Source of the DNA: Oculina patagonica
Lineage: Eukaryota
Assembly: GCF_052425735.1 (NCBI RefSeq)
Contig: NC_135762.1
Coordinates: 27,900,001 to 27,964,000, forward strand
Length of the DNA: 64,000 nucleotides
Direction of reading: 5' to 3'
In this document: piece by piece, positions 3,795-61,000 of the stretch
Position numbering within the stretch: position 1 is the stretch's first letter
Layout: each line of letters opens with the position of its first letter
Program-made: the position numbers and the translations under genes
Notes under the pieces: generated by a model
What the model saw: the letters and a program-made list of their open reading frames with translations, nothing else
Databases searched by the model: none
What the model was told of the DNA's origin: nothing

Positions 3795-5454
3795 CTAAAA
3801 TAAAGGTCCTTTGAAATTGGTCAAAAAACAACAAACACTCCACACCTGATTTACAGATCCTCCTAAGACTAGAGGTTGGACTCTGTCAAAAAAATGATAT
3901 TCTTTGACTCGTCTTATAGCTCTCTCAACGTGTATTCGAAGTCTTGCAATTTCTTGGGTGTTGGAGACCTCTGATGATGTAAACTGTTTATTCCCAACTT
4001 TAGAACAACTTTTACTTTTGCCTAAGAATGGAGGAATTGCAAGTTTTACATTTACTTTGTTGAGAAGGTCATCGATCAAAAACCCCTTGTCTGCCATAAC
4101 TTCAGTTCCTTCTTCCAGCAAGTCCAGAATTCCACTTTGACGAGTTATTTCTTTGTCTGATATGCTTCCTTGAAACAAAGAACTCACAAAAGAGACTGCT
4201 CCATTTGGGGATATCCCGACAAGGCCTTTATATGTGGTGTGGGACTTATAAGAAGAATAAAACTCAGAATTTAAAACCTTAGAACTTGGGGTCTGAACCT
4301 TTATCTCTGTACAGTCCAAGATCACACAAGTATGTGGGTATGTTGCTCTAAAACAATCCGGTAGGTTTGCCCGCACCTGGGCTTTTGAGGGCCAGATGGG
4401 TACCTGACCAAGCATGAAATAAAGAAAATTAGCCCATGTCAAAAATACTCTACTAACAGTACTGGGACTGACTTTAAACCTTACAGCCAAGTCCTCAATA
4501 GGAAAACCTTGCTTAATTCTGACTAGAAATAAAAAGAACTGATCAAACAATGGTAGGGTACACTTGGTGCTGGTTTCAACGCCTTCTTTTCTTTTGTAAT
4601 CCACTGGCGATTGACCACTGCGCTGCACTTGGGACCATGTTGCCATGTTCTTAGCATAAGGCTGAAGCCAATTGAATACTGATTTTAAAAGTTCATAAGA
4701 ACCGAATCCTGTGTAGAACTTTATCTGTTCCGGACCTTTTGAAAATCTTTCCAATCCAAACTTTTCCAACGACAAAACGGCAACTTGTTCCTCGAGTTCT
4801 GCAATTTGTTCCTCCAGTTGTGCTATACGATTCTTCAACTGTTCTTCAGCGGTTGGTTCTGAGTTTACCGAACTGCCTTCCAACTTACTGGCTTCTTCAT
4901 CACTGGATGCATTCTTCTCAAACCGAAGTTTTTTACGTCGTTGGAACACATTCTCTGGTCGCTGCTGTGTTGTTTTGGTCCATGCAAAAACTGACGGCAC
5001 TGCTTGATCCCTTAACCGCTTCCTTCCAGCCAACGTGGTTTGAATTTCATCTGTTTTAAAATGCTCTGAGCAAACCAACGTGGAGTCTTTTTGTATCTGT
5101 AAACAATCGCCGATCGATCTAATGTTAAATTGATTGTTTATACTGTGAAAAACTCCACAAAGGAAACTAATCATAATTACATAATTCACTATTGCTGCAA
5201 AAATCAACGTTTATTGAGCTTATGTTTAGGTCTTAGTCAAGCAAAGTCAAGAACAGCGATCGATCGTAAACAACCTATTTATGCACGATTTTTACCTTGA
5301 ACAAAGGGCCTTCATCACGTCGTATGGCAATTATCCAAGCCTTTCTTAGCTGTCCATCCTTCGGGAAATTAAAAAACTTCAAATTTTTTCCGGTAGCAGA
5401 TGATTTACGTTGGTCGTTGTTACACAAAGGAACACAACAATGATAGTGCGCCAT
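3795..5454 (-). CDS. ISL2EU transposase, THAP + coiled coil + HTH + DDE (DDE_Tnp_4-like); exons 5454-5296, 5096-3795 (~486 aa)
   Basis: Exon 1 MAHYHCCVPLC...FPKD...W..AIRR joins VCSEHF to form the THAP domain. Catalytic triad in ILDCTE, MADKGF and RIHVERAI. Confidence 0.92.
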
Positions 5455-12225: not shown

Positions 12226-12438
12226 TTTAACCTGATTTTTTCTCTGTCTTTCGGGCTAAAAATTGCAACTGCTTATTAATTGCTACGAACACGCCGCTTA
12301 GATCATTTCATCCACTCGGAGAAAAAAAAAAATACCGGCAAGCCAATTTGGTAGTTTCAGCATTTCCATTCCTTTTTCGATAGATAATTTTATTTTGTTC
12401 ACTTTTAAACCTTTAAGGATGCTTGTGTATTTCCTTAA

Positions 12439-12671
12439 AAGAGCTATATCACGGTATTTTAAGTCATTTTTCTGTTTGCTGTTAAATTGAAGGAAACCTC
12501 AAAATATCGATTTTGTAAGGTAGAAAAACACCAACAGAGAATAAAATCCTGAAAATAATTAAACAAGGATGGTTTCGACTGACGAAGATTTCAAGACGGA
12601 TTATGAATAACAAACTTGAAAATAATACTAATAATAATTTTCAAGTTGAGTGGTCCGTGACGTAGCTTCTT
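12439..12671. mobile_element. Short TTAA-targeting MITE (Kolobok-like)
   Basis: TIR AAGA(A)GCTA..TCACGG; TTAA at 12435-12438 and 12672-12675. Empty site in the paralogous fragment at ~51700 (minus strand). Confidence 0.75.
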
Positions 12672-13023
12672 TTAACGATGCAAACGAAAAGACGAATTGT
12701 AATGGAAACGGATAGAAATAGCAGAAAGTGACTAATGGCTTGAAACAATGTTCGCTAGACGTTGGCAAACCAAAAATCTGCCCTGCATCTGTAGCGTTGC
12801 CAACTATGATCTTTAAATCTCTCACTAATCCATTTAAAGGGTATTATAACAGGACTTTATATACTATCATATTTGGGAAATGGATGGTTGGACACGATTT
12901 TTACGATCGTGTGCATGTAGACACCAAGGATTATTTTAGTTTCGCGTAAACAGCTTAAGATCGAGTGCAAGTGTGTTAAGACACTGTCAAGGTTAAATCC
13001 CAGCAGAAGATGATGTGTGCTCC

Positions 13024-13995
13024 TCAAAGAGCCATTGTTCGCGAAACAGAAGGTAAAACAGCTGGTCTTACGACTCTGTTCTTTTTGGCTAAAGGAACTG
13101 ATAGGACGAAGCGCCGTCGAAACTTGACTTTACAAATAGCATACAGCATCGGGTTAAGGAAAAACGAAATCTTGGCAAAGACACTACATGTACTGGTAGC
13201 TAAAGGATTAACCTTTTGTCCTAGAACTAAAAGGAAGGACACTATAGCGTAAGGTGACCACGGGATTAAAAAAGCAGCTATGATAGCTAAAAAGTACATG
13301 GAAGATTTACGATGTTTCTTCAGAAGCGCCTGTCTCGCAGTCATTGCGAAACGACTTCCTTGGGAAGTATTAACAGCAATCTGTTTGGAAACTTGGTGGA
13401 TCTTGTAATAGCAAAACGTGATCATGGCCAAGGGTAGAAAATAGCAAGTGACAACGACAACTCCAAAGTATGCCTGATCGCTTGGAACAGATGATTCCCA
13501 TTGAACTGAGCATGTTACATTTGTTCCTTCTAGGCCATATCTTGACCACCCGACCAAAGGTGCCACGCTGAAGCCAAACGAGTAAATCCAAGAGGCCAAG
13601 ATTATCAACACCACTTTCGTCTTGTCAAAATATGAATCTCTTGTAAGAGATCTAGTTATTGTCAAATACTTTCCCGCTGAAATGGCAGCCAAGTGAGTGA
13701 TAGAAACGAGGGCGAGTAGAAATATCAAGAAGGCATGAGCCTTGCACCCAGCCATGCCAAACGGCCATTCCTTATGGAAATGCCTTGCGATCGACAGTGG
13801 AATAGCTATCGCGCAAGAAAGAAAATCACTTACCGCGATACTGAGAATAAGATATGTCGGTGCTGAAATGCGACGATGGATATTTCTACAAATTGTAAAG
13901 ATCACAATTCCATTAAATGTGATTCCAAAAAGGCAGACCAAAATCTCGGTGATCACGAAGATTGTGTTCCAGCTTGCGAGACGTCCTTCATGCAT
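13024..13995 (-). CDS. Opsin (intronless class A GPCR), copy 1, 323 aa
   Basis: 7 hydrophobic segments, TM1 GxxxN, TM2 SD, C110/C187 equivalents, WSRYGLEG (E181), retinal-binding K296 in FAKIS, NPMLY. Confidence 0.92.
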   Translation of the reverse strand: MHEGRLASWNTIFVITEILVCLFGITFNGIVIFTICRNIHRRISAPTYLILSIAVSDFLSCAIAIPLSIARHFHKEWPFGMAGCKAHAFLIFLLALVSITHLAAISAGKYLTITRSLTRDSYFDKTKVVLIILASWIYSFGFSVAPLVGWSRYGLEGTNVTCSVQWESSVPSDQAYFGVVVVTCYFLPLAMITFCYYKIHQVSKQIAVNTSQGSRFAMTARQALLKKHRKSSMYFLAIIAAFLIPWSPYAIVSFLLVLGQKVNPLATSTCSVFAKISFFLNPMLYAICKVKFRRRFVLSVPLAKKNRVVRPAVLPSVSRTMAL

Positions 13996-15685: not shown

Positions 15686-15833
15686 NNNNNNNNNNNNNNN
15701 NNNNNNNNNNNNNNNNNNNNNNNNNNNNNNNNNNNNNNNNNNNNNNNNNNNNNNNNNNNNNNNNNNNNNNNNNNNNNNNNNNNNNNNNNNNNNNNNNNNN
15801 NNNNNNNNNNNNNNNNNNNNNNNNNNNNNNNNN
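15686..15833. other. Assembly gap (N run)
   Basis: Run of n characters. Confidence 1.
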
Positions 15834-17406: not shown

Positions 17407-18815
17407 ATGATTCCGCGGAGGCTAAAAACGATATCTACTATTGCGCTCTGTGCTTTAGCCTTATGTGTGATGTTGAACGCAGTAGTGTTTTTGAAAACTG
17501 TCAAGTCAGCTCAAAGAGGTATAGTAAATAACTTTTCTACTATGTGCATTTTCTTCTACAAATAAACTTCACTGCTGCACAGCTAGAGCTGACTCAGTCG
17601 TAATAATGTGATCAACGCATAATTCTCGCTGGTTCAACCCCAGTATAACAGGGATGAAATCAAACTGAATGATAAACTGTAACTATTATGGTTTCGTTGA
17701 AACGTTTCATAATACCATCTTTGCCACCTTTGCTGAACTGAATTAAATTAAACACCTGGATTGCATGTATTTTGCTGTTGTATGTATTAACGTTTATTTC
17801 ATTTTTAACAGTCTCTTCCATGCAGAGAACCTTGAATGTTAATTTGCTGGAACCGAGAAATACAGAGGTAAGTTCTGCCTAAAAATTGTGCTGGCATACA
17901 TTCATGGCGAAAACTGAAAAGGGTCAAAATTTGTCATTGTGTTTTTGCATAAAATGTGAAGCAACTTGTTCACAATTTCCTTTTGCAATCTCTCCATTTC
18001 AGGATGACAGATTGCCTTTTAGCACAGAAGAAAGACAACGCGAACTTAAAAGTCATCTGACTGATTATTGCCGAGCAAATAAGCATAAACGAGGTTTGCC
18101 GAGCCTGTATCGTCTTCACATTATTGAATCGCCTCAAATTGTCTTCTGTATGGTTCCTAAAGTAGCCAGTCGTCAGTGGAGGGCTATATTTAAGCAACTG
18201 CGCCTGCGCAAAGGGCAAATGCGAGCTAATCTGGATCAATACGACGCAACAGATATCTCCAGTTTCCTAAGGAACTCGTACAAGTTTATGTTTGTTCGAG
18301 AACCTTTTGAGCGTTTGTTATCAGCTTACAAGGATAAATTTGTTTCAACAAGGCCAGTGGATCGACATATGCTCGATACTTACGGAAGAAAGATTATAAG
18401 GAGATTTCGTCCGAACGCCACCCAAAAGGCACTGCAAGCCGGTGACGACGTCACCTTCCCAGAATTCATAGAGTACATTTTAAAAGAAGGTATTCACGAG
18501 GGCCTGAATTGGCATTGGAATACGTATGAAGATCAGTGTAGGCCTTGTAGTGTGGAATACAACTTCATAGGACGCTTTGAATTTCTTACCCAGGATGCAG
18601 AGTATGCATTGAAGAAAGCTGCAGTTTATAATTTGACTCTGTTTCCGAGCAAGACTAGTTATTCAAAAACACACCAAGAGTTGATAAAGTATTATTCACA
18701 GATCCCCCTCGACTGGATTATACAGCTTGGTCGTGTTTACCGCAGCAGTTTTGAGATGTTTGGATATCCTTTTCCAGGTCCCCTCCAGGTCTTGTTTTAT
18801 AACGTCACTGGTTAG
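17407..18815 (+). CDS. Carbohydrate sulfotransferase, CHST11/HNK-1ST family; exons 17407-17518, 17812-17867, 18003-18815 (~326 aa)
   Basis: Type II signal-anchor in exon 1; 5'-PSB motif FCMVPKVASRQW, 3'-PB motif FVREPFERLLSAY, and HW..Y...C.PC...Y..IG.FE. Confidence 0.9.
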
Positions 18816-40600: not shown

Positions 40601-42224
40601 CCCTATGGAGCCAACTGCATTGAGGACAACATAGCTTCGAAAGCAAATTTCTGGGGCTATCCAATTTCCAATAACCTGAGCTTCTATGCGTGTCCAGAAC
40701 ATTACTGTCAAAGTCCAGCTTCTAATTCAAAAGAGTACAACAGTTGTCATGGAAACAGAGCGGGTTTTCTCTGTGGAAAGTGTGCTCCAGGAGTATAGTG
40801 AAACTATGTTTTCTACTGAATGCCGCAAAAGTACTGAATGCAACAACCATATGCTATGGATAATAACAATCTTGTTGTCAACTGGATTTACCCTTTATCT
40901 TTTGAGTAAACCACCGATTTTGAGTTTGCTTGGAAGGCAAATTTTATGGTTTAGAAAAACGGAAAACGCCTGCGTCATACAAGACTTAGGTCACGCCTAT
41001 CAACACTCGGACCGTGGGTACCTAAAAATTACATTTTATTTCTATCAAGCAGCCGAACTACTGATTGTCGGCTCCACGGAACATTTACTCCGAAAGATTC
41101 CGTTTATTTTCAGCGTGTTTGCTGCTTTTAATTTTCAAGTAAGAACTCTAAACAGAGCGATAGACTGCCCTCTTGCAGGACTTACTGCAGTTTCCAAGGC
41201 GTTGCTACTTTCTGTTACAGTTTTCCTCACAATGGCCGAAGTTGTAGTTATATACTGCCTGAACTTTGTTTTTAACAAGATACGACGAAAAGAAGGACCG
41301 TCTCTGATCCATTACATTGCTGTTTTCATAGAGTTACTGCTGTTAGGTTACGAGCGGCTTGCAGAGACGGCGCTCAAGCTCTTGCACTGTGTCCCTATTG
41401 GCTCCAAAAATCGGCTGTTTATCTATGGGGAAGTTCTTTGTTGGCAATGGTGGCAGTACATTCTACTTGCTTACATTGTAGTATTTGTGGTTCCTTTTAT
41501 TATTGTACTTTATTGTGGTTCTTCCATGCTCTATAAAGCCTCCATTTCTGTGTGGGAGTTTCTTGGAGCTTGCATACTTCCACTGCCCTTCCTCATTTAC
41601 TGGTTTTTGAAGAGGTTTCTGCAAAAAAGGGAAAACAATTCTGTGAACACACAGGCTAACAACAAAGATGTTTTAGAAATACTGCATGGTCCCTTTCGTA
41701 AACCAAACTCTGAAGATACAGGAACGCTCTACTGGGAGAGCATTTTGATTGGTCGACGGTTCGCACTGCTTGCTTGTCTTGCCTTCATTACAGACTCAAT
41801 GTTCCGAATGGTTTGTATGACTATTGCCTGTGTTCTCATTTTACTCCATCACATACTGAAGAATCCTTATCACGATCCGATCGCCAACAAAGCTGAAACG
41901 TTCTCTCTCCTGACCTTAGTCATTATGGCAATTATTAACCTTACAAAAGCAACTCTCATCTCGTTTGGAACAAGCATTGATGGTCCAACCAAGCCTTATT
42001 TGGAAACTCTGGAGTGGGCAGAGGTCTGTGCTTTGGCGTTTGTCCCAACAATGCTGTCTATTTTTGTTGTTTTTGCCATTTTCTCTCAGATGGTACGATT
42101 ACTTATTTCTCTGGCAATGAAAATATACTGTTGCTTGCAGTGGCATCCATATCGAATATCGTTTTATTTCGCAAGACATCAGGAAAGACCTCTTCTGGAT
42201 ATTTCCGAAGGAGACGGATCTTAA
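37663..42224 (+). pseudogene. Disrupted gene for a large membrane protein: parallel beta-helix-like ectodomain, Cys-rich region, multi-pass (~7) TM domain
   Basis: YVSKTGDDSESCG...PCKTIGQA N-cap motif, repeated NCSF.N / F..N.A..GGA turns, C..CPPGFYS, CPYGANC, C.GNR.G.LCG.C..GYS, then a hydrophobic C-terminus. The reading frame shifts at least six times, and there is an in-frame TAA at 37858. The 5' end is uncertain. Confidence 0.75.
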
Positions 42225-44761: not shown

Positions 44762-44906
44762 NNNNNNNNNNNNNNNNNNNNNNNNNNNNNNNNNNNNNNN
44801 NNNNNNNNNNNNNNNNNNNNNNNNNNNNNNNNNNNNNNNNNNNNNNNNNNNNNNNNNNNNNNNNNNNNNNNNNNNNNNNNNNNNNNNNNNNNNNNNNNNN
44901 NNNNNN
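44762..44906. other. Assembly gap (N run)
   Basis: Run of n characters. Confidence 1.
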
Positions 44907-46609: not shown

Positions 46610-49400
46610 TGTAATTTAGGAATAATACCCTTGGCCTCCATTTTGACGGTTTGTGCTCCTAGTAAAATGCTGGTTATGACCATGAGTTAAAGCAGAAGAA
46701 AATATCGAAAGAATTGAAAAAGTACATGCCCACTTTAGACATATTCAGGGGGGGGGGGGGGCTTAGTTCGGAAGCCGTTATTAACGCTTTTCCCTTTTCC
46801 TGTTGAATCCATTTCTTGCCTTTGTTTTAACGGTTTGTTTTAAAAGGATTCCCCAATCAATCAAAACAAGGAAGTCGTTAAGTACGTCCAAGGCCTCACA
46901 TAACTCAAACATGAGTTTAATGGTTCATTTTTCTTTAGTTACTTGAACTTAACTGGTTTATTTAAATATTACAACAAAGTAATACATTCACCAAAACGAA
47001 AGGTTTACGATTAATGATATAATAATTCTGTGCTGTATTTTTTTTTTTTTGACCAAAGGAACTAATGACAATATATAAATTTAATCGTGGGGCACATAGA
47101 ATACCGCCAGACAAGTTCATTTATTCGATCTATAAAAAAGAGCTAGTAAATTCAAGAAAACTTATTCTGATAATTTTAACGTGACACCTTTGTAGTTAGC
47201 TCGTGCATTTGTTCAAAAACGAGAAGAAAAAACACATGGTGAAATACTTATCTCCAATCGAAAATGTTTTCCGTCGCTGTCAGAAACGTCTCAAGGGAAC
47301 TGTGCTCTTTTCTTTTCCTGGAAGTAATTTAATACAAAAAATATTTAACAATCAAAGATCATCTAAAACCCTAGGCTAGGCTAAGCTTTGGCCTATTCTT
47401 TAAGGCGTGGGATAAATAAAAATATAATAATAGCTAACAGGTATTTACAAGGCTGGCAAGTGTACAGACAGTATTTTTTGTCGTGACTTTTGCAAGTGTA
47501 ATGTTTTCATAAACATAATGAAAAACAGGTGAAATGCGCTCAGATTACTGATTTTGGAGGAAACGGTTTAATTCATTTGTTATTTAGATTGCCGACTGAA
47601 TGTTGAAATGTTTAAGAGAAGACAAAACTTCCTGATAACTTGAACGGAACTAGCGCAACAAACAGAATAGACACGAAAATAGCATTGCAAATCAAGTTGC
47701 CGGATGCGTTGCGATCACTTGGTTGAAACGCTTACCAACAGATATGAGAAACATTCGGACACAATGCAACAACCCGCTTTTTGACAAAACAAAACGGTAC
47801 CAGCTATAGTTTAATAAGGTTATAGGCCTCGAGGCAGTGGTTAAAAAGCATGCATGAAGGACGTCTCGGCCTCGCAAACTGGAACCCGATCTTCGTGAGC
47901 ACGGAGCTTTTGGTCTGCCTTTTTGGAATCCCATTAAATGGAATTGTGATTTTTACAATTTATAAAAATATATGTCGTCGCACCTCAGCCCCGACCTATC
48001 TTACCCTCAGTATCGCGGTGAGTGATTTCCTTTCTTGTGCGATAGCTATTCCACTGTCGATCGCAAGGCATTTCCAAAAGGAATGGCCGTTTGGCATGGC
48101 TGGGTGCAAGGCTCATGCCTTCTTGATATTCCTACTCGCCCTCGTCTCCATCACACACTTGGCCGCCATTTCAGCGGGGAAGTACTTGACAATAACAAGA
48201 TCTCTAACAAGAGATTCTTATTTTAACAAGGGAAATGTGCTGTTGATAGGCTTGTCCTCTTGGATTTACTCGTTTGGCTTCAGCGTGGCACCTTTGTTAG
48301 GATGGTCGAGATATGGCCCAGAAGGAACAAATATAACATGCTCAGTCAAATGGGATTCATCTCTTCCAAGCGATCAGGCATACTTTGGAGTTGTAATCTT
48401 CACTGGATATTTCCTACCCTTGGCAGTGATCACGTTTTGCTATTACAAGATCCATCAAGTTTTCAAACAGATCGTTGTTAACACTTCCCGAGGAGGTCGT
48501 CTCGCAATGACTGCGACACAAGCTCTTTTGAGGAAACGTCGTAAATCTGCCATGTACTTTTTAACTATCATAGCTGGATTTCTACTCCCGTGGTCACCTT
48601 ACGCTATAGTGTCCTTCCTTTTAGTTCTAGGACGAAAGGTTAATCCTGTAGCTACCACTGCATGTAGTGTCTTTGCCAAGATTTCGTTTTTCCTTAAACC
48701 AATGTTGTATGCCATTTGTAAAGGCAAGTTTCGACGGCGCTTCGTTCTGTTAGTTCCTTTAGCGAAACAGAACAGAGTCGTAAGACCAGCTGTTTTACCT
48801 TCTGTTTCGCGAACATTGGCTCATTGAACAGCATGCATCAACTTCTGCTGGGATTCAACTTGGCAGTGTCTCAATACATACTTGGACTAATGGCCGTAAG
48901 CTGTTTACGCGAAAGTATAAAAAAGACTGTGTAAACATGACGCACAATCTTAAAAATCATGTCAAATCATTTAGTTCGCAATGTTGATAGTATAAATCCC
49001 GCTGTAATACCCTACAAATGGACAAAAATAATGAAGTGATTTCAATAGAGGGATTTAAGATCATTGTGAACAACGCTACTGGTACAGGAAGGATTTTTGA
49101 TTTTCCAACGTCTAGCGAAAGCTGTTCCGTGTCATTAGCCATTTTGTAAGGTTTTCCGTTCCAATTGCCTTACAATATGTATTTTCATTCACCATTTCGA
49201 CGAGATGTATAAACATCCTAAGGTTTAAAAGGGATCAAAATATAAATTTCTATCAAAGGAGGAATGGAAAAGTTGAAACTGTCAATTTGGGTAGCCGATA
49301 TTTTTTCTCCAAGTAAATGAAATGATATTAGCGGCCTGCAGCTGTTAGCAATTTATAAGCAATTGTAATATTTAATAGCATGAAAAAACTGCAAAAATAA
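46610..49400 (+). repeat. Inverted segmental duplicate of ~12240-15370 (opsin plus flanks)
   Basis: Collinear reverse-complement similarity in the CDS and in both upstream and downstream non-coding DNA. Confidence 0.85.
47850..48827 (+). CDS. Opsin (intronless), copy 2, 325 aa
   Basis: Close paralogue of copy 1. K296 (FAKIS) and E181 (WSRYGPEG) are present; NPxxY reads KPMLY. Confidence 0.9.
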   Translation: MHEGRLGLANWNPIFVSTELLVCLFGIPLNGIVIFTIYKNICRRTSAPTYLTLSIAVSDFLSCAIAIPLSIARHFQKEWPFGMAGCKAHAFLIFLLALVSITHLAAISAGKYLTITRSLTRDSYFNKGNVLLIGLSSWIYSFGFSVAPLLGWSRYGPEGTNITCSVKWDSSLPSDQAYFGVVIFTGYFLPLAVITFCYYKIHQVFKQIVVNTSRGGRLAMTATQALLRKRRKSAMYFLTIIAGFLLPWSPYAIVSFLLVLGRKVNPVATTACSVFAKISFFLKPMLYAICKGKFRRRFVLLVPLAKQNRVVRPAVLPSVSRTLAH

Positions 49401-52099: not shown

Positions 52100-55000
52100 T
52101 TAATTTCCGGGGTAGGGCGGTGGTGGCTCTCCAACATAAGAAGAATGTGCTGTTTCAAGTTGTACTTGCAGAGGCGTTGTGCATTCTGGGAAAGCGGTCA
52201 TTGAGAATTGTGGGTAAAATTCTAGCTGCTGGGGAGGTACTCGGGCAGACTGCTGCTCGTTCGGTATGGCAACTGTTATTGCTGTTGGCTGATCCGGGCG
52301 ATGTGTCCCAAAAATGTATTTGCGATCTTTGCAGCACAAAACTAAAAAGATAAGCCCGCCAATGACGAAGATTGCGAGGAAAAAGAAGCCAACAAATGTG
52401 CTCGCGTTGAAGGCTAAAAATAAAAACGATAAAAGAATAAAACTAATAATTAGATAATCGTATAAACGAACGAATGAATGAATGAACGAATGAATGAATG
52501 AATGAAGGAAGGAAGGAAGGAAGGAAGGAAGGAAGGAAGGAAGGAAGGAAGGAAGGAAGGAAGGATCGTTTCCCTTAAATCTTGTTCCTTTACAAAAATA
52601 TTTACAGTTTAAAAAAGAAGTTTTGAATAAATCAGTTGAACTTCCACATCAAACTGGAAGTTTTCATGGAAACTGGCAGTGCGGCAAAGAAGATGACTGG
52701 AAGAGTTTCCCTGTAATGGCGGAAACGACGGATTTCGCGGATTTCGCGGAAATTTTCAGATTAAAAAATAAAAAAAAATAAAAATAATAAAAATAAAAAA
52801 TAAAAAAATAAAAAATACATTTTTTATTTTTTTTATTTTTAATATTGATATATTCAACTATTATACTTACAGTTTTAAAGAGAAGAATTAAATTAAATCT
52901 AAAAATTTCCGCGAAATCCGCGAAATCCGTCGTTTCCGCCATTATTGGGAAACTCTTTCAGTCAACTGCTTCGTAGTACTGCAAGTTTCCATGAAAACTT
53001 CCAGTGCTGCAAAGCAGTTGACTGAAAGAGTTTCCCAATAATGGCGGAAACGACGGATTTCGCGGATTTCGCGGAAATTTTTAGATTTAATTTAATTCTT
53101 CTCTTTAAAACTGTAAGTATAATAGTTGAATATATCAATATTAAAAATAAAAAAAAAAAATAAAAAATATTTTTTATTTTTTTTATTTTTTATTTTTATT
53201 TTTTTATTTTTTTTTTATTTTTTAATCTGAAAATTTCCGCGAAATCCGCGAAATCCGTCGTTTCCGCCATTATAGGGAAACTCTTCCAGTCAGCCGCTTT
53301 GCAACACTCCCAGTTTCCATGAAAACGTTCAGAGCTGCAAAGCCCTTTCTTACTATCTTTTCTCCTTCAATGTGAAAATGAAAATTGTTTTTTATAGTTT
53401 TATGTATGGTGTATTTTTAACATAAGTCGTGAAAATTTTGTGATACATCACGAACATATATGCACCGTAGTAGATGATCTTTGACTCAAACATTTTTCAT
53501 TCTTATTGCGGCTTCGTTATCAAGTTAACTGTTAACTGGTGCGAAATGGCTGTCGATTGTCAGGTCAACAGATTGGCTGATCAGTGCAAATAATCGCGAC
53601 ATTAAATTCATGAAACTACTGTGGCGAAACAATTCGTCTAGAAACTCTCTGAAAAGCATTTTGGAATTGATGAAGTGACACAATTGGCTATTAAAAAATG
53701 TCGCTATGGCTTCGTTATCGGCTTGATTTTAGTGTAAAAATAGCTGCTAATTACTAGGTTATGTAATGATCTGCTGATCAACGCAAATAATCGCGATATT
53801 AAATTCATGGAAATACTGTGGCGAAAAAATTCGTCTAGAAAACACTCTGGAAAGCATTTGGGAACTGATAGAGTGACACAATTGGTCATTTAAAAGCGTC
53901 ACTGTGGCTTCGTTATTGACTTGATTGTTAGTGTAAAAAAAGCTGTAAATTACCAGGTTAGGCGATGATCTGCTGATCAGTGGAAATAATAGCGACATTA
54001 AATTCTTTCAAGTAATCTGGTCCCTACTGAGTTCATTTTTTGGCTATAATTATTCCCGGGGAATTAGCAAGTCTGCTCTCTATAAAAGCAGAACACGTTT
54101 AAAGGCATAAATCAGTCCAAGATGCAGAGCTCGAGAGCACGTTTCCCTGCGAGACAGCTAAACAGTCGAACAATTAAGAGCGCGGCGTTGTGCTATTTAA
54201 GCCCAGTGGTTTTGGGAAAGTGTAGCATTACAAGTGCGAAGTGCGTCTGCAGAGTTCAAGAGAGTGGTTTTCAGGACGCTTGGAATAGCGTGTGCCGAAC
54301 TAGAGATGCCTGTGATAGCGCACTACGAGGTTAGTTTCTGATATTGCGATTTTAAACTTGTTCAGTGTCTCTTGGGTGAGATAACCAGAAGCAGATCATT
54401 CGGTAATAATTTTTTGCTTTGTCTATTTCGCAGGCATGAAGAATGTAGCGTTCTTTTTTAGTGCCATTAGTACGCAAAAGTTGAAGAAACAGCGAGATAA
54501 GAAGAAATCAAATGATCATGACGAGAATGAAGATAGCGATGATGCGGACGAATATCCAGAATTAAGTCAGTTAGCGAGTTCAACGAGCCAACAATGGGCC
54601 GAAAGTCACGCATCAATTATAAACCACAAGCTTTGCCCAGCTGTGAGCTACTGGATCGCGTCGACAACGCCCAACGGTGCTCCACGTAGCCCCCTTGGTA
54701 TCCATCGTGTTCTCTTGGAGTGCAACGTGGACGTATTTATAAATCAGGTAACAAAAATAACATGTTTATTCACATTCGTACCAATCGCATTAGCTTCACT
54801 AGCCGGATGATAAAAAGTAGTTACTAGCTTATATGAAGGCAGTGAATCAAGCAGTGAAAATGTGACAATTCAAAGGACCATTCCAATCATCGAAATTAGT
54901 TTTGCCTTGAATTTACGCTACGTCGGGCTCCCTTAAAACTTGACAGTACTCGGAACGACGAATCACTTGTTAGGACTAGGTCAAAGTTGCTCACCACCTT

Positions 55001-58000
55001 AGAACTTTAATTAACTGGCAACTGTTCTGAATTTTAGGTCGCTTGTCACGAAGGGAAAGAAAGTGGCGCAATGAAAGAGCTTTTTAAAGTCCTTAAAGAC
55101 CACAACAACACCTTCATGGTGGAGTTGGTGAATTCGTCTTACAAATATTGCTTTCGAGATGAATTTGAAAGTGTCCTGGGTGAGGCCGATTCAATAGATG
55201 TTGACGAATGTGGTACCGAGAACGTGGTCAGAATTTGTCTAGTCGATCCCTCGTTCCATTCCAGTCTTTCGGTGGCGTTGGGAAAACTCCAAATTGCAAA
55301 GTTGGTCATCGAGCACTTCGGATTCCACGTAGACGGCTCGGATATTCAGACAGGAAACGAACCGGTCGTTGAAAAGGCAAGATTATCTGATAAACTCACA
55401 GTGCTTGTGAACGATATTGGCATCGCCATGGAAAAGCTCGGGTACGCTCTCTATGCTGGAAAGATCTACAAAAAGTGTGAAAAGGCAAGGTACACCTATT
55501 GGTATAAGTGCGAAGTTGAGGCGTTTGTTAATAGCTTGGCGGCCAATCGATCTTTCAAAGCCAGACTACTTAAGGACATGAAGAAAGTCATCGAAATCCT
55601 AGCCAACCCACATTGCGAAGTCATTCGACCTCTTTGCGTGGACTACGATTTGATTGAGGTGAACGAAGGCCAGTGCTGGTCAATCAAGGAGCGACGTTTC
55701 TTGGAAAATGCGATCAAAGACAAGGACATCGGTCATGTTACACCCCGAGCGTTTTCGCCATACGATCCAACCAAAGTTCCGGATCCAAAATATTTCAGAG
55801 AGATCTTAGAGAACAGCCTAACGGAAGCCGAAGTTGGGGAGTTCTGCGAGGATTTCATCAGGCTTCTACATCACAACCAGAAACGACACAAAGACAAAGT
55901 ACCATGTCTGATTGGCGCTGCGAACAGCGGTAAAACGAGTTTATTTCAACCGATCTTAGGACTCGTACATCACAGCAACATAGCGACTATCACGAAGCAG
56001 CGCGTGTTCAATAAGGCCATGATTAATCGCTTTACAGAAGTGATTTTCATTGACGAAGCCAGTCCCTCAACCTTAGACATCGACGATTGGAAAATCCTTA
56101 CCCAAGGCGGATTTACGGCATGCGACGTAAAGTACCAAACGGCAAAGAGCTTCATTAACCGTTGTCCAATGCTTTTGACCGCCCAGACGAAGCTTGAATT
56201 TAAGGCCGATGACCAACCCGCCATGGATCGAAGGTTGAAGAACTACACCTTCAAGAGTCTGCCCAACCCGAGAAAGAAAGCGACAGAGTGGCTTAGGAGA
56301 CACCCCATGGAGTGTGTTGCGTGGGCGGCTACGAAGGCGCGTCCACCTAGTGACCAAGAAGAGAGCTCGGACAACGGTGAAGACGAACAAGAGCCAGAAA
56401 TCGGCGATGGCGTCCTTAAAGCCGAAGAGAAGGATGCTCTGCGGACGCTGTCACTCTTGGAGGAGAGCTGTGAAGATGATTCGCTAGAAGAGACGAACGA
56501 AGCGGTCAGTGCAATGGAAGAAAGCAACGGCGAACCGGACACCTTGCAAGACCACCTCAGTCAGCTTCAGCCGGGCAGTCTTAGACACAGGCAAATGGCC
56601 CACATTCTGGAAACAGAGAAGGAGAAGCAGAAACAGATAGACCAGTTTTACCGGACGAGAGATGTCGAGAGGTATGAAGATGTTCAGACGGCGGTAGATC
56701 AGGATGAGGCACGAGGCGAAGCTGCGAGAAAAGCGTTCGAGGGCAGTTGGTTGAGAGACACCGAAATTGAACTCAAAGAGTGTTGCGATAAATATCAAGC
56801 TACGCAAGACTCTTTCGTGCGCTCGAATGTGAAGGCGTGGATGGAGGTTCTGTGCGAGAAGCTGAAAGCTCACCACCAAGCCCTGGGCACCTTTAACACC
56901 ATCGAGGCCATAGAGGAGCGAAAGAAGGTGTGTACAGCACTCGGCCTGCTCAGGAAAGAAGATCATCGTCTGGTGACAAGTGTGGCGGAGCGACTCCCGG
57001 TACTAACTCGCCCAAGTGCAGATGCAGACGAAATTGTTGCACAACAGGATGTAAGCGATGAAAGCAGTCAAGAACGGAGGCTTTTCATCACTCCAGTGCC
57101 CAGTACTAGTCGTAGGCCGTTACGCCAACACGACGACTGCGCGGTGTCCGAAGCACTGCTCCGAGCAAGTTCTACCTTAAAGCGGAAGAGAGGTTCCAGC
57201 AGTCAGCGCGGAAGAGAGCAACAAAGAAACACCATAACAAAGTATCTCTCGAGCACGCAACATGAGTGAACGCAGTCTGACGATCAGAGAACGGAGAAGA
57301 GTAGCGACGACGAGATGTTGTTTGTCAGTATTGTAGTTCTAAGTTACATGTTAAGCGACGTGCCACGATTACGACAGGCGAGATATAGAATTCATGTATA
57401 CAGACAGAGAGATATAGAACATTGCTCGCTACCAGGAGTGTCACAAAAAGTTCTTTCTGTTGTTGTTACAAAAGAGTGTACTTGTCAAGTCAAGAAATTT
57501 ATTTAATGATGTAGTAATTTATTACTGTATTCTTTATTGCACAGTCACGATTAAATGCCTTTCTTGCTTAACACAAGTTTGAAATGTCATTGCTGTCCTT
57601 GCCTTGGTAATTAAACTAGCTGCATTTTCATTCCAGCCCTTTTCTTGAGAGAGTCCGCCGTTCTTCCGTCTTGAAATTTGAAATCGGGATCTCTCAAAAT
57701 TGCCGTCCACTGTCCAAACCCGTACCTTTTTAAACCTTTCTTGAGAAAATTGTCCTCTTCTTCCGTGAATTTCAACACCCGTCGATGATTTCGTTGAATT
57801 TGCAATTGTTTTTTGGGAGGGGAGTCCCTTTCAGAAGAGGCGCTCATTGATTCTGCTGTTCCGACCGATTCTGAAATTGTTGAAGTTGTAGCGCTAAACC
57901 TCGTGTGCACTTCCTTATCCAAATCTGAGCCTTTCGTTCCTTGTAGCTTTTGCAGACACTCGTGAGCTTTCACAGCAACTTCGCGCGATCTCTGCTTTTG

Positions 58001-61000
58001 ATAGTGAACTTTTGCAACGGCAGAACTGTGTTTTTGGTCTTCTGACAAAATTTGTTGCTCCGTGCTTGTGAGTAGATTGAGGCTTTGCGTTTCGACAATT
58101 TGACGATAGCGCGTTGGATGAATATACTTCCCGATTGCATCGAACACCAATTTACTCATGACGTCGCCCAATTTGCTATGCTGGCCTCCGTTTCTAGTGA
58201 CAAGTACGAAGTCGCACTGGGGTTTGAGTAATGGCCTTACGAAATTGATGTAGCTTTCCAGCACCCGCATGCTTGCATCAGTCAAAATTAATGAGTCAAA
58301 TCCATACTTGCTGGCCGTTTTGAACTTTTTCTGGTCAATGAATCCTCCGTTCGCCTTAGCTGTTTTAACCATGTCCACCGTCAAGTACTGATAAGTCATA
58401 GGGCGAGATCCCTTCACCTTTATGAATAAATACACGGCGACAAATTTCGTGGCAAATGTTAGGTCCAAAGGATTCACTTGACCCGGAATAGTTTTGCAAG
58501 TCTTTACCGTGTTTTCGTAACGAGGCAAATGAAATGTCACCACTTCTAACAGTTCTTCCATGGTTGCCCAGTGCCCTCTAGCATCCAAAGTCTCAATGTC
58601 TAGATCTTGTGTCCACTGCAATCTCATCATCTTTGCCACGGTTTTGCGCGCTCGTTTGAGGTACAGCTCCGTTGAGGACAAATTTCGAAGAACTGTGTCT
58701 GATGCGCCATTTATCTTTCTGAAGTCGATTAATTCGGAAATCGCATCAATGTAGCCCAATCGGCCACCGTGTCCGAGTTTGCATTCATCTTGCAGGTAGT
58801 CGATAAACTTGAACAACAAACAATGCGAACACAGGCTAAAATCCAGCACTTCAAAACTCAATTCCTCTTCATCTTCGCAGCAAAATTTGAGAAATTTGAA
58901 ACACCTCTTGACTATCTGCTGGGCTACACGATCTTTCTTGCAACCCCCACCACTTCCCGTCAACCACTTCACAAACGATTCGCCAATTTTGCTGGAAACT
59001 GAAAATGAAGGCAAAACTCTGGCAGTTTGTACTGTGATTTCACTCGATTTAACATCACTGGCGCCTTCTCTTTCGTATGCAGCGAGTATTCCCAGATCAG
59101 GTTTCTCGTCAAAGTAAAAGAACCAACTGTGCTTGGTATTCACATGTTTTCTGCACCCTCTCTGACTTTGAAAGCCATCATGGTCACACACTTGTATTGG
59201 GCAATGATACAATCGGTCGGTTTCATTCTTTTCCAGGTGAAGCCGTTTTGGTTTGGGCGATGCTCCATCGATATTTGACCAATTGATTTTACACTTCTTG
59301 CTCATTTTATCATCAAGGTAAAATGGTCAACACAATCTCCTAGAACTGAATTTCTTTTCCAAAAAAATACGACGCACCAATTACACCTTAAGGAACTTCA
59401 TTCGTGTTTAAACTTGGCAAGGCGCGCCTCTTCTTGCCTGCCCTCATTACTATTGTGCAAAATTCATGACACCCAAGATTGTGCTCAGCTTGCCCAAGCA
59501 GGTCTATGCGCGCCCCATTGTTTTTCTTCATTTCAATGGACAATATAATTTAGGAACAAAATGGTCAAGTAAGCGCAAGGAATTCGGAACCAAAGAGTCC
59601 TGAATTTGTTCCTAAATGAGCAGTTTAGGAACAATACGTTCCATTTACAAACAGGAACTCGGAACAAAACGGTCTCAAATTATCAATTTGGGAACAAATC
59701 GTTCCATTCACAGTTAAGAACTCGGAACAAAACGGTCCTAAATTATCAATTTGGGAACAAATCGTTCCATTCACAGTTAAGAACTCGGAACAAAACGGTC
59801 CTAAATTATCAATTTGGGAACAACGCGTCCCATTTACAGATAGGAACTCGGAACAAAACGGTCCTAAATTATCAATTTGGGAACAACGCGTCCCATTTAC
59901 AGATAGGAACTCGGAACAAAGCAGTCCTAAATTATCAATTTGGGAACAATATGTTCCATCAACAGTTGGGAACTCGGAACGAAATGTTCCTGTTTTATCT
60001 TAGGGTGAACGTTTTGTTCCTAACTTTATAAAAAGCTGGTCCTCTTAAGGTTAACAGGAACACAAATATGAGGAACAAATTATATTAGAGGAACGTTCCT
60101 AAAGAAAAGATCGGAACATGCTACAGAACTTAAAATCAGTTAAAAACGGGCAAAGATATAAATTACAAGTCACAAAACAGTTAGTTGAGCGTTTAGGTAA
60201 AATGAAAGCAATCATCGAAACTTGGTAAACTCTACCGCACTCAAAGGCTGTAAAACACGCAGTGAAAATTTTTGGGAAACGTTAAGGAAGGAAGGAAGGA
60301 AGAAGGGATGGATGGATGGATAGATGGATGAATGATAAATGAATGAATGAATGAATAATGGTAGACTTTTCTGACCGTAGAAAAAGGCATCAAGGCAACT
60401 GAATGGAATTAATTGCGATAAACTGAAATCAGTAGATCTCGGAACGGTAGTCTGAATATTAAATAGTTTTCTGTTGTTTTATCTTTTTTCTTGTTTGACT
60501 GTACTTGTGTGTGATTTTTTTTATTTCTTTGCCTCTTGGACTATCTGTTTATCTTCTTGCTATTAATACTTAGAAGATCTAGGAGAAATAACCCTACAGA
60601 TACATTGAAAGTATTTAGATAAAAAACTGATAACCTAACACAAGCAAAGCTCAATGCAAGTTACCTTCGACTTCTTGTAAGAGGGATAACAATACTAGGA
60701 AATAAAACAAAAAATTTACAGATGCATTGTGGCTCAAAACATTAACTAAAAAATTAAGGTCGAAAAAAAAAAAAAACAACACTGGTTCATCAGCCATTAA
60801 ACCATGTCGACTGTTCACCCGTGAGCTCTCACTAAACTAATTAGTTTAAAAATCCTAAGCTGAATCTCTTTGACAAAATAAAATCAATCATTAACGCAAC
60901 TGTATGGGTTGCAGCTAAGTGTGTCATGGTAATATTATTAGTATGGATAATCAAATGGTGACGAGTGAAATTAGGAAATAATTTTACGCGCGTTTTGTCC

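Follow-up and report, generated by a model that had tools for sequence, protein, structure and literature searches.

The window analysed here is a 64-kb stretch of DNA on chromosome CM126639.1 (GCA_052425735.1), and proteins 99% identical to those it encodes carry the name Oculina patagonica. It contains a 7.7-kb mobile element that extends from 52565 to approximately 60283-60288, within an (AAGG)n tract. The element starts with AT-CGTTTCCC and finishes with GGGAAACG-TT. The initial annotation placed the left junction, (AAGG)n followed by ATCGTTTCCCTTAAATCTT, at 52565, and the right junction, AAAATTTTTGGGAAACGTT at 60265-60283 followed by AAGG(AAGG)n, at 60283, and the sequence reads exactly so at both positions. 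The tandem repeat of the left flank spans 52468-52565 with a period of 4 and 24.5 copies (TRF), and the final two bases of the flank plus 52565 read GGA. No further copy of the element is found inside the 64-kb window. Its features are as follows.

52468-52564, no strand: left flank, a compound purine-rich microsatellite, (GAAT/GAAC)n grading to (GAAG)n, i.e. the (AAGG)n target tract
52564-52566, plus strand: GAT before the left arm; GA corresponds to spacer positions 6-7 and T to position 8, which is always on the left arm
52567-52583, plus strand: left arm, with core CGTTTCCC at 52567-52574 and extension to 52583
52654-53343, no strand: AT-rich palindromic region just inside the left end, with 229-nt arms that are 90% complementary (inverted repeats I1-I4)
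53576-54005, no strand: 2.2 tandem copies of a 198-bp unit, upstream of the helicase ORF
55071-57269, plus strand: 732-aa ORF; its core is an SF3 helicase of the P4/D5-primase C-terminal type, with GAANSGKT as Walker A
57611-59305, minus strand: 564-aa predicted tyrosine recombinase ORF (alignment, AF2, Foldseek, and Myb/TRF matches)
59547-60130, no strand: GGAAC/GTTCC motif cluster in the interval from the recombinase start codon to the right arm
60265-60281, plus strand: right arm, with core GGGAAACG at 60274-60281 and extension back to 60265
60282-60288, plus strand: TTAAGGA, spacer positions 1-7, the putative element-borne part of the crossover, which stays with the right end
60289-60360, no strand: right flank, the remainder of the compound microsatellite, (AGGA)n grading to (GATG)n and (GAAT)n

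A predicted tyrosine recombinase and an SF3 helicase ORF

The only ORFs of the element with domain matches are the recombinase and the helicase. The 564-aa protein combines an N-terminal C2H2-like zinc finger, core-binding and catalytic domains, and a C-terminal TRF-like Myb domain. Its candidate catalytic residues are R301, K329, R399/R401, H426, and Y435; among 27 sequences (31-90% identity), R301, K329, R401, and H426 are invariant, and conservation reaches at least 90% at R399 and Y435. The distances from R301 to R401 (100 residues) and from H426 to Y435 (9 residues) match those of lambda Int and XerD. A Foldseek search of the PDB with the AF2 model (pLDDT 81) returns almost exclusively tyrosine recombinases among the top 40 matches, the best being XerA (7e-4), lambda Int, XerH, XerD, Cre, and Tn1549 Int, with probabilities mostly of 0.8-1.0 and 230-390 aligned columns for the top matches. 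The modelled fold, together with the order and spacing of the residues, identifies the protein as a predicted tyrosine recombinase. No reverse transcriptase or RNase H lies beside this gene, and a DIRS/Ngaro retrotransposon was thus ruled out.

Curated profiles do not recognize the integrase domain of the 564-aa protein (no match in Pfam, PHROGs, or NCBIfam), which we attribute to a sequence too divergent for such profiles; one relative has a weak Phage_int_SAM_1 match. DUF3504 matches 0 of the 27 recombinase members and the Myb domain 23 of them, and when the recombinase alignment served as a profile query against the PDB, the Myb domain alone was matched.

The 732-aa ORF has weak domain matches to DUF5906 and Parvo_NS1, and a match to TIGR01613 (1e-4). 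It has 183 homologues at E ≤ 0.001, the named ones being from stony corals, and some of these carry PF19263 or PF00519. The NCBI gene model (P0136) is longer, at 917 aa, and we take the 732-aa ORF as the helicase gene because the 185 extra N-terminal residues of that model are missing from homologues of 737-800 aa. The AF2 model of the helicase is poor (pLDDT 51), so it was unusable for a fold search. An HUH/Replitron-like reading of this protein was rejected, as its invariant columns include no conserved histidine motif. Several families conserve the helicase ORF; one copy (L001) lacks it, and another (L010) retains only fragments. In both of these copies the recombinase gene is intact and the ends are precise, and the L010 family has multiplied, which indicates that the helicase is not needed in cis.

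The GGAAC/GTTCC cluster includes a 63-bp, 6-copy tandem array (59610-59991), and a conserved GTTCC also lies about 10 bp inward of the left arm. In other families, the last 1.3 kb of the element holds 21-49 of these motifs per kb versus about 2 per kb elsewhere. The cluster is a candidate for accessory binding sites, origin iterons, or promoter elements.

Conserved inverted arms at both ends

The arm cores CGTTTCCC and GGGAAACG are perfect reverse complements, each located 2 nt inside its own junction, and the match of the extended arms is 14/17. Taken alone, the latter score is unremarkable, since 0.37 to 1.13 such matches are expected by chance anywhere in 64 kb (shuffles). An 8/8 inverted match at an equal offset from two independently defined junctions, on the other hand, has a chance of about 4^-8. 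We then compared 17 copies from three assemblies, i.e. the window copy and 16 more from Oculina and two other assemblies. The arms are unchanged in all 17, across families whose recombinases are 77-99% identical. They are also unchanged in a set of 11 left ends and 10 right ends of different families, and the right arm is identical in 10 Oculina right ends. The consensus across families covers about 11 bp (CGTTTCCCAAA), with TTA at positions 9-11 in the window copy. It is this position and conservation, rather than the 14/17 score itself, that makes the pairing of the arms non-random. The perfect 8-bp arms, 14/17 when extended, that the initial annotation had reported are borne out in the window, and the 8-bp arms recur in the other copies. 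In more distant relatives (31-47% identity), the contigs stop short of the element ends.

Joined ends within chromosomal tandem arrays

The predicted joined site exists in DNA, at eleven head-to-tail junctions of related families. Each consists of GGGAAACG, an 8-bp spacer of the form T-N-N-A-R-G-A-T, and CGTTTCCC (CGTTTTCCC in one case). Four of these junctions, in L011, L013 (two), and L009, read GGGAAACG-TAGAAGAT-CGTTTCCC, while that of L018 reads GGGAAACG-TGGAGGAT-CGTTTTCCC. Six more are found on six contigs of the JGI metagenome Ga0126336, with the spacers TAGAAGAT, TATAGGAT, and TAAAGGAT. These six are the only ones with Crypton-like flanks among the 27 stretches that a search of metagenomes for the joined site returned; the remaining stretches were set aside as chance or bacterial palindromes by their appearance. 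For the family of the window, we infer the joined spacer TTAAGGAT by analogy, because the nine Oculina copies examined include no joined site.

The layout of the joined site is arm-T-(6 bp)-T-arm, with the arms 8 bp apart as in loxP, and the eleven junctions agree with the initial proposal that the ends share the geometry of loxP, FRT, and dif, with inverted arms around a spacer of 6-8 bp. The evidence supports the view that the ends, once joined, make up a site for recombination in which inverted arms enclose an asymmetric spacer of 8 bp. The initial annotation went further and saw in it the attP of a circular intermediate. Of this claim, the joined site itself is present at the tandem junctions, but every one found lies within a chromosomal tandem array rather than on a free circle. 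The joined site has no match in IMG/VR viral contigs, and no relatives of the recombinase or helicase are found in viral contigs either; there is hence no sign of a virion-borne form. A BLAST search with the flanks of the two non-microsatellite insertions (see below) against all retrieved DNA gave no match to an empty site, and the look-up of an empty allele via the neighbouring GPCR gene gave only the window's own chromosome. In the DNA examined, neither a free circle nor an empty site nor an excision footprint is seen.

Target sites and the position of the crossover

The copies are numerous, lie at different loci with different flanks, and carry no reverse transcriptase. Tabulating their flanks, as the initial annotation had suggested, reveals precise, conserved ends and no fixed-length target-site duplication: in all 17 copies, GAT stands directly 5' of CGTTTCCC at the left, and the right end reads GGGAAACG-T-NNARGA. 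The target tracts are (AAGG)n, (AAG)n, (AAAG)n, (AGG)n, (AGAGG)n, and (ATAG)n, plus two non-microsatellite sites. For example, the window copy, L005, and L008 are in (AAGG)n, and other targets are (AAG)n in L001, (AAAG)n in L002 and L006, (AGAGG)n in L003, and (AGG)n in L004. Host DNA directly adjoins 14 right and 15 left junctions, and a purine-rich or (ATAG)n microsatellite is adjacent to all of these except those of L015, which borders a 219-bp satellite, and L016, which is in non-repetitive DNA; the left flank of L009 is merely a degenerate repeat. Insertions in microsatellites always have one orientation relative to the purine strand.

Short inverted repeats close to both ends might also be expected of a cut-and-paste TIR transposon moved in trans by a DDE transposase, in which case the similarity of the flanks would be a target-site duplication. 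We regard this as highly improbable, given that the element has no DDE transposase ORF, that the arms are subterminal with asymmetric outer bases (AT versus T-N), and that no duplication of fixed length is seen (e.g. L016 has AAAATGAT at the left and TGGAGGAT at the right). The exact 8-bp spacing in the tandem junctions is also unexpected for DDE elements.

A second explanation is classical att recombination, in which AAGG would be a common core of attP and the microsatellite, with both strands exchanged there in the manner of lambda or Cre. The window copy, L005, and L008 agree with it, as they are in (AAGG)n and have AAGG at both junctions, and a crossover anywhere inside a shared AAGG would give an identical product. 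The initial annotation similarly took AAGG as the homology shared with the target, a claim that the other copies contradict. Specifically, the AAGG of the element remains at the right junction whichever repeat unit is the target, and it is found only there in L001, L002, L003, L004, and L006; in L001-L004 the left junction shows the native target unit, while the left end of L006 was not found. Moreover, other families have GAAG or GAGG in place of AAGG and are inserted in (ATAG)n and non-microsatellite sites. Left and right junctions consistently share no more than GA, in most cases RGA (spacer positions 5-7): the element's right end closes with RGA, and every left flank closes with GA, which is part of RGA except in L016 (TGA). 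A shared AAGG core is thus an improbable account of these insertions.

The junctions point instead to one edge of the spacer. Positions 1, 6, and 7 are invariant, and positions 2-5 are far more variable than the adjacent 100 bp. When positions 2-6 were tested, 4 of 45 cells differed (all at positions 2-3) versus 1 of 900 in the adjacent 100 bp (Fisher P = 2e-5). By our reading of the table, 13 of 13 informative right junctions have the element-type overlap and 12 of 12 left junctions the target type. Even beside non-microsatellite DNA, the A at position 7 is retained at the right junction, as in L015 (TGGAGGA then C). Because the right junction carries the spacer of the element and the left one the sequence of the target, the crossover would be located at the right edge of the spacer, and the pattern fits a cut between positions 7 and 8. 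Where the strands are cut and which is exchanged first are read solely from the junction sequences, and biased mismatch repair could yield the same asymmetry. Some family spacers also resemble captured repeats, e.g. TGGAGGAT is similar to (AGG)n and TAGAAGAT to (AAG)n.

A possible route of integration

We consider it likely that 52565-60288 holds a DNA transposon of the Crypton type that is intact and was recently active; together with its loxP-like site, this provides the best joint explanation of these observations. How it integrates can be outlined more tentatively. Each end would present the recombinase with a short inverted arm, CGTTTCCC(AAA), for recognition, and the element would be excised or copied as a circle in which the two ends are joined into the site. 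On the model of Cre, each strand may be cut after the arm plus 1 nt, with a 6-bp stagger. The first and productive exchange would occur at the cut beside the left-end arm, where the 2-3 swapped nucleotides (the complement of RGA) must pair with the target, and the remaining overlap may mismatch it, as in CTnDOT and Tn916. The Holliday junction would then be resolved without a normal second exchange, most likely by replication, to which the SF3 helicase of the element might contribute. Such a resolution would explain why there is a single junction pattern where two are expected. A resident right junction, with a perfect element-type overlap, would be the best target, and this would explain the tandem arrays.

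The integrases of CTnDOT and Tn916/Tn1549 tolerate heterology in the overlap, the overlap or coupling sequence varies between copies, and for CTnDOT integration about 2 bp of identity beside the first cut suffices. These bacterial elements have arm-type sites and host factors, and both junction patterns arise after replication of the heteroduplex. The coral element is thus similar in its heterology-tolerant overlap, and differs in that only one junction pattern is present.

Conversely, the SF3-helicase protein could drive replicative or rolling-circle copying, with the recombinase just resolving multimers and the tandem arrays being concatemers. The conserved helicase ORF of several families, the conserved iteron-like GGAAC array, and the head-to-tail arrays are all in line with this, and an active Crypton is known to gain copies despite clean excisions (PMC9977147). 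However, the helicase protein has no conserved nuclease motif, HUH or otherwise, and tandem neighbours belong to different families in L009, L013, and L018, which is impossible for concatemers. Ends are also precise in L001, which has no helicase gene, and in L010, which has only fragments of it and whose family multiplied, and the junctions fit a recombinase-type exchange at a defined site. On balance, we find helicase-driven copying improbable. Integration by the recombinase may be extended to a view of the coral elements as integrating episomes, i.e. circles with a loxP-like site, a recombinase, an SF3 replicative helicase, and an iteron-like GGAAC array, which would enter the target by a single strand exchange at RGA only and have the Holliday junction resolved by replication. 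This view is possible, but we hold it with considerable doubt.

Relation to known Cryptons and other recombinase systems

The element has the traits of a Crypton, with a short target-matching motif at one terminus and no DDE-type duplication, and it most likely belongs to the CryptonV group. As described in brief in PMC8869645 (citing Kapitonov and Jurka, Repbase Reports 2012;12:2034), cnidarian CryptonV elements insert specifically in microsatellites. On that description alone, CryptonV and the present element are alike as tyrosine-recombinase DNA transposons with a cnidarian host and a preference for microsatellites, to which L015 and L016 are the two exceptions here. The targeting of microsatellites by CryptonV in cnidarians was already known, and what is added is a new element with a well-defined site.

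Cryptons integrate by recombination of a short terminal motif with a near-identical target, as for CryptonF-1_cRei, which ends in CACCG and targets CAYCG (PMC9977147). The target motif of CryptonF, CryptonS, and the Goodwin model is 4-6 bp long, e.g. CACCG/CAYCG or TATGG, and CryptonF and CryptonS are reported to be without inverted repeats (PMC3212892; PMC9977147). Like these, the coral element has an end motif that equals the target motif (here RGA), no duplication of the DDE kind, a presumed circular intermediate, and increases in copy number. Unlike CryptonF and CryptonS, it has inverted arms of 8-11 bp flanking the crossover, a shared motif of just 2-3 bp, an additional SF3 helicase ORF, and a recombinase in which a C2H2 finger and a TRF-like Myb domain replace GCR1_C. 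CryptonA, CryptonI, and the derived DUF3504 genes are also tyrosine-recombinase DNA transposons of animal hosts, and CryptonA and CryptonI match DUF3504 and lack a C-terminal domain and terminal repeats (PMC3212892). The coral protein, by contrast, has no DUF3504 match and has a C-terminal Myb domain, and the element has inverted arms.

A further likeness in features is with the endogenous nimaviruses of crustaceans, which have a tyrosine recombinase with a C2H2 zinc-binding module and are inserted in a host microsatellite, the telomere repeat. These are several hundred kb long and use a different target repeat (PMC10871703).

Inverted arms around an asymmetric 8-bp spacer are also shared with Cre/loxP, Flp/FRT, and Xer/dif, and the coral junctions are consistent with cleavage one base in from either edge of the spacer, as in loxP. 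The coral arms are shorter, with 8 perfect bp and about 11 in the consensus, and, whereas those systems require identical spacers, the coral target has no arms and shares only (R)GA.

Significance

To our knowledge, the integration mechanism of Cryptons, proposed since 2003, has never been tested biochemically. This family offers a compact and conserved assay substrate: the joined site measures about 30 bp, the crossover position is defined, and the recombinase gene is intact and exists in many near-identical copies, so that excision, integration, and cleavage assays can be designed directly. A eukaryotic recombinase that is active in animal nuclei, uses a short site, and tolerates spacer heterology could also interest genome engineering. 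If the episome view is true, these elements would parallel, in eukaryotes, the integrative elements of bacteria that tolerate heterology, and their spacer would be gradually rewritten by the microsatellites visited. For annotation, the family accounts for 7-9-kb insertions and tandem arrays within the purine-rich microsatellites of stony corals.

Element ends and their arms

The element's left junction comes after an (AAGG)n tract that runs up to position 52564, and the element there begins with ATCGTTTCCCTTAAATCTT. At the right junction, AAGG repeats come after AAAATTTTTGGGAAACGTT (60265-60283). Read directly from the window, the junction sequences at both ends are those described in the initial annotation. 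CGTTTCCC (52567-52574) and GGGAAACG (60274-60281) are reverse complements with no mismatch, each arm core sits 2 bases inward of its junction, and the extended arms match at 14/17 positions. Shuffling predicts 0.4-1.1 matches of this kind in 64 kb, so that the match is not unusual alone; its meaning comes from its placement at both junctions and its conservation among copies.

Further copies come from nine Oculina loci retrieved via their recombinase genes and from eleven loci in two other ENA assemblies, with recombinases ~90% and 77% identical. In the orientation of the window, every copy with ends found starts with GAT-CGTTTCCC and finishes with GGGAAACG-T-N-N-A-R-G-A. The stacked ends of eleven families or subfamilies have the arm consensus CGTTTCCCAAA in common, from which the window's left arm diverges slightly in its outer part. 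Just inside the left end lies an AT-rich palindrome (52654-53343), with 229-nt arms that are 90% complementary and no loop.

The joined site

The claim that the ends rejoin as an arm-spacer-arm core site is well supported, as such sites are seen in 11 head-to-tail junctions outside the Oculina loci. The junction GGGAAACG-TAGAAGAT-CGTTTCCC links elements of the same family in L011 and L013, and neighbors from different families in L009 and L013, while the junction in L018 is GGGAAACG-TGGAGGAT-CGTTTTCCC. A scan of JGI metagenome contigs, using the arms with a free 6-bp center, adds six junctions with Crypton-type flanks, all from one sample and with spacers TAGAAGAT, TATAGGAT, and TAAAGGAT. One of these contigs is a chromosomal tandem array, because its downstream element, full-length at 7.8 kb, terminates in an (AAG)n tract. 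The spacer is 8 bp long and reads T-N-N-A-R-G-A-T in 11/11 junctions; the joined ends form a site laid out like loxP. The Oculina loci yielded no head-to-tail junction, so for the window's family the joined site is predicted, from its right-end sequence and the invariant T, to be TTAAGGAT.

Targets and crossover position

Insertions occupy several microsatellites, as well as two sites of other kinds, and their orientation relative to the purine-rich strand is identical throughout.

Targets of the insertions (L-numbers are fetched loci with further copies)
(AAGG)n: window, L005, L008
(AAG)n: L001, L039
(AAAG)n: L002, L006, L012
(AGAGG)n: L003
(AGG)n: L004, L014, L017, L019
(ATAG)n and (ATGG)n: L010, L011
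Non-microsatellite: L015 (right flank a ~219-bp tandem satellite; reverse-complement orientation)
Non-microsatellite: L016 (non-repetitive)

AAGG had been proposed as homology common to the element and its microsatellite target, which is wrong in detail: AAGG remains at the right junction irrespective of the target repeat unit, and the native unit is what stands at the left junction—e.g. AAAG-AT in L002 and GAAG-AT in L001. In our reading of the junction table, the six central bases are of element type at 13/13 informative right junctions, and target-type bases are present at 12/12 informative left junctions. Spacer position 7 (A) is kept at the right junction, even beside non-microsatellite DNA, and position 8 there is target sequence. 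The spacer's right edge is therefore the effective crossover position. Only GA is constant at both junctions, preceded by a purine in all cases but one.

Spacer positions 2-5 differ among otherwise near-identical Oculina copies. Over positions 2-6, 4/45 cells are variant in these copies, whereas the neighboring 100 bp has 1/900 (Fisher P = 2e-5), and family-specific spacers look like microsatellite units. L005 additionally contains an isolated right-end fragment of 450 bp (~12337-12788, reverse-complement orientation), whose spacer is TGGAGGA. It lies 2.2 kb downstream from a complete copy and also adjoins (AAGG)n; no corresponding left arm was found.

Genes of the element

The 7.7-kb insert carries two long ORFs, arranged tail-to-tail:
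55071-57269, plus strand: 732-aa ORF with an SF3 helicase core
57611-59305, minus strand: 564-aa ORF, a tyrosine recombinase by alignment and structure model

The 564-aa ORF is 99% identical to Oculina patagonica (stony coral) proteins and belongs to a very large family, with 958 matches in a word-indexed search and 1,718 clusters at E<=0.001 in a 50%-identity library. Curated profiles recognize only its C-terminal Myb domain, nearest the TRF1/TRF2 type. Its identification as a tyrosine recombinase is based on catalytic residues and structure-model matches. In an alignment of 27 members (identity down to 31%), R301, K329, R401, and H426 are invariant, R399 and Y435 nearly so, and the spacing (100 residues from R to R, 9 from H to Y) is that of lambda Int and XerD. 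An AlphaFold model built on this alignment (pLDDT 81) was compared with the PDB using Foldseek, and tyrosine recombinases make up nearly all of the 40 best matches, including XerA, lambda Int, XerH, XerD, Cre, and Tn1549 Int. The alignment also reveals a conserved N-terminal C2H2-like zinc finger (C35, C40, H54, and H59).

The 732-aa ORF matches DUF5906 and Parvo_NS1 weakly and the P4-family primase C-terminal domain at 1e-4, and its relatives carry PF19263 or PF00519. No conserved nuclease motif was found in its N-terminal part. The NCBI model for this helicase (P0136, 917 aa) includes ~185 extra N-terminal residues from upstream ORFs (54436-55070); this extension is probably an annotation artifact, because it is absent from homologs of 737-800 aa.

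The helicase gene varies by copy: it is full in L017, fragmented in L010, and absent from L001, a single 4.7-kb Oculina copy. In the numerous copies of the L010 family, the recombinase gene is intact and the ends are precise, yet the helicase gene is in fragments. Such copies may rely on helicase provided in trans, or may be able to do without it.

Two Oculina subfamilies (L001, L003-L006, and L008 vs. the window, L002, and L007) are nearly identical in the recombinase gene and at the right end, and differ in the remainder. Nucleotide homology ends at the recombinase stop codon (57611), the helicase genes are just ~36% identical, and the left ends diverge past the arm. Judged from sequence, this pattern looks like modular exchange between elements.

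A model for integration

Tyrosine recombinases form a 3' phosphotyrosine and make two cuts with a stagger of 6-8 bp; ligation can follow only once the 2-3 nucleotides beside each cut have been swapped and have paired with the partner. In the simplest model fitting this chemistry, the cuts would lie one base inside either spacer end, and the first exchange would occur at the cut adjoining the left-end arm, requiring RGA in the target. The remaining overlap could be heterologous, comparable to that tolerated by CTnDOT and Tn916. Exchange of both strands, followed by plain replication of the heteroduplex, would be expected to yield two junction patterns about equally often. Only one is seen in 12-13 independent insertions, which suggests either that replication resolves the Holliday junction once a single exchange has taken place, or that repair is strongly biased.

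A resident right junction, with one arm and a perfectly matching overlap, would be a preferred target, and this would account for tandem arrays, mixed-family ones included. The interval from the recombinase gene to the right arm holds a dense GGAAC/GTTCC cluster, which is conserved across families and may, speculatively, provide accessory sites for protein binding or an origin of replication.

Other features of the window

Outside the element, the window contains the following:
1488-2813: (ATTC)n microsatellite (1488-1565) and, directly after it, an ORF of 411 aa in which Pfam recognizes a YqaJ-like viral recombinase/exonuclease domain (2e-15); this may belong to a further mobile element
3795-5207, minus strand: 470-aa ORF with THAP, HTH_Tnp_4, and DDE_Tnp_4 domains, a PIF/Harbinger-type transposase
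13024-13995, minus strand, and 47850-48827, plus strand: intronless rhodopsin-family GPCR ORFs
17886-18815, plus strand: sulfotransferase ORF
40686-42224, plus strand: 512-aa ORF with no Pfam match
15686-15833 (148 bases) and 44762-44906 (145 bases): N runs

The element is flanked by these GPCR and sulfotransferase ORFs, which are ordinary host genes.

Relation to known Cryptons

Cryptons are eukaryotic DNA transposons with a tyrosine recombinase; in the accepted model, a short motif at the element's terminus recombines with a target nearly identical to it (PMC3212892). This model is supported by the active CryptonF-1_cRei, with terminus CACCG and target CAYCG (PMC9977147). The animal groups CryptonA and CryptonI match DUF3504, and have neither a C-terminal domain nor terminal repeats (PMC3212892). 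The element fits neither, as it has no DUF3504 match and possesses both a C-terminal Myb domain and inverted arms. Cnidarian CryptonV elements are described as inserting specifically into microsatellites (PMC8869645, citing Repbase Reports 2012;12:2034); host, enzyme type, and target all agree with this description, which makes CryptonV the probable assignment. The element adds a new member to an already known kind of transposon, and its value is that it offers a precise substrate with which to test Crypton movement.
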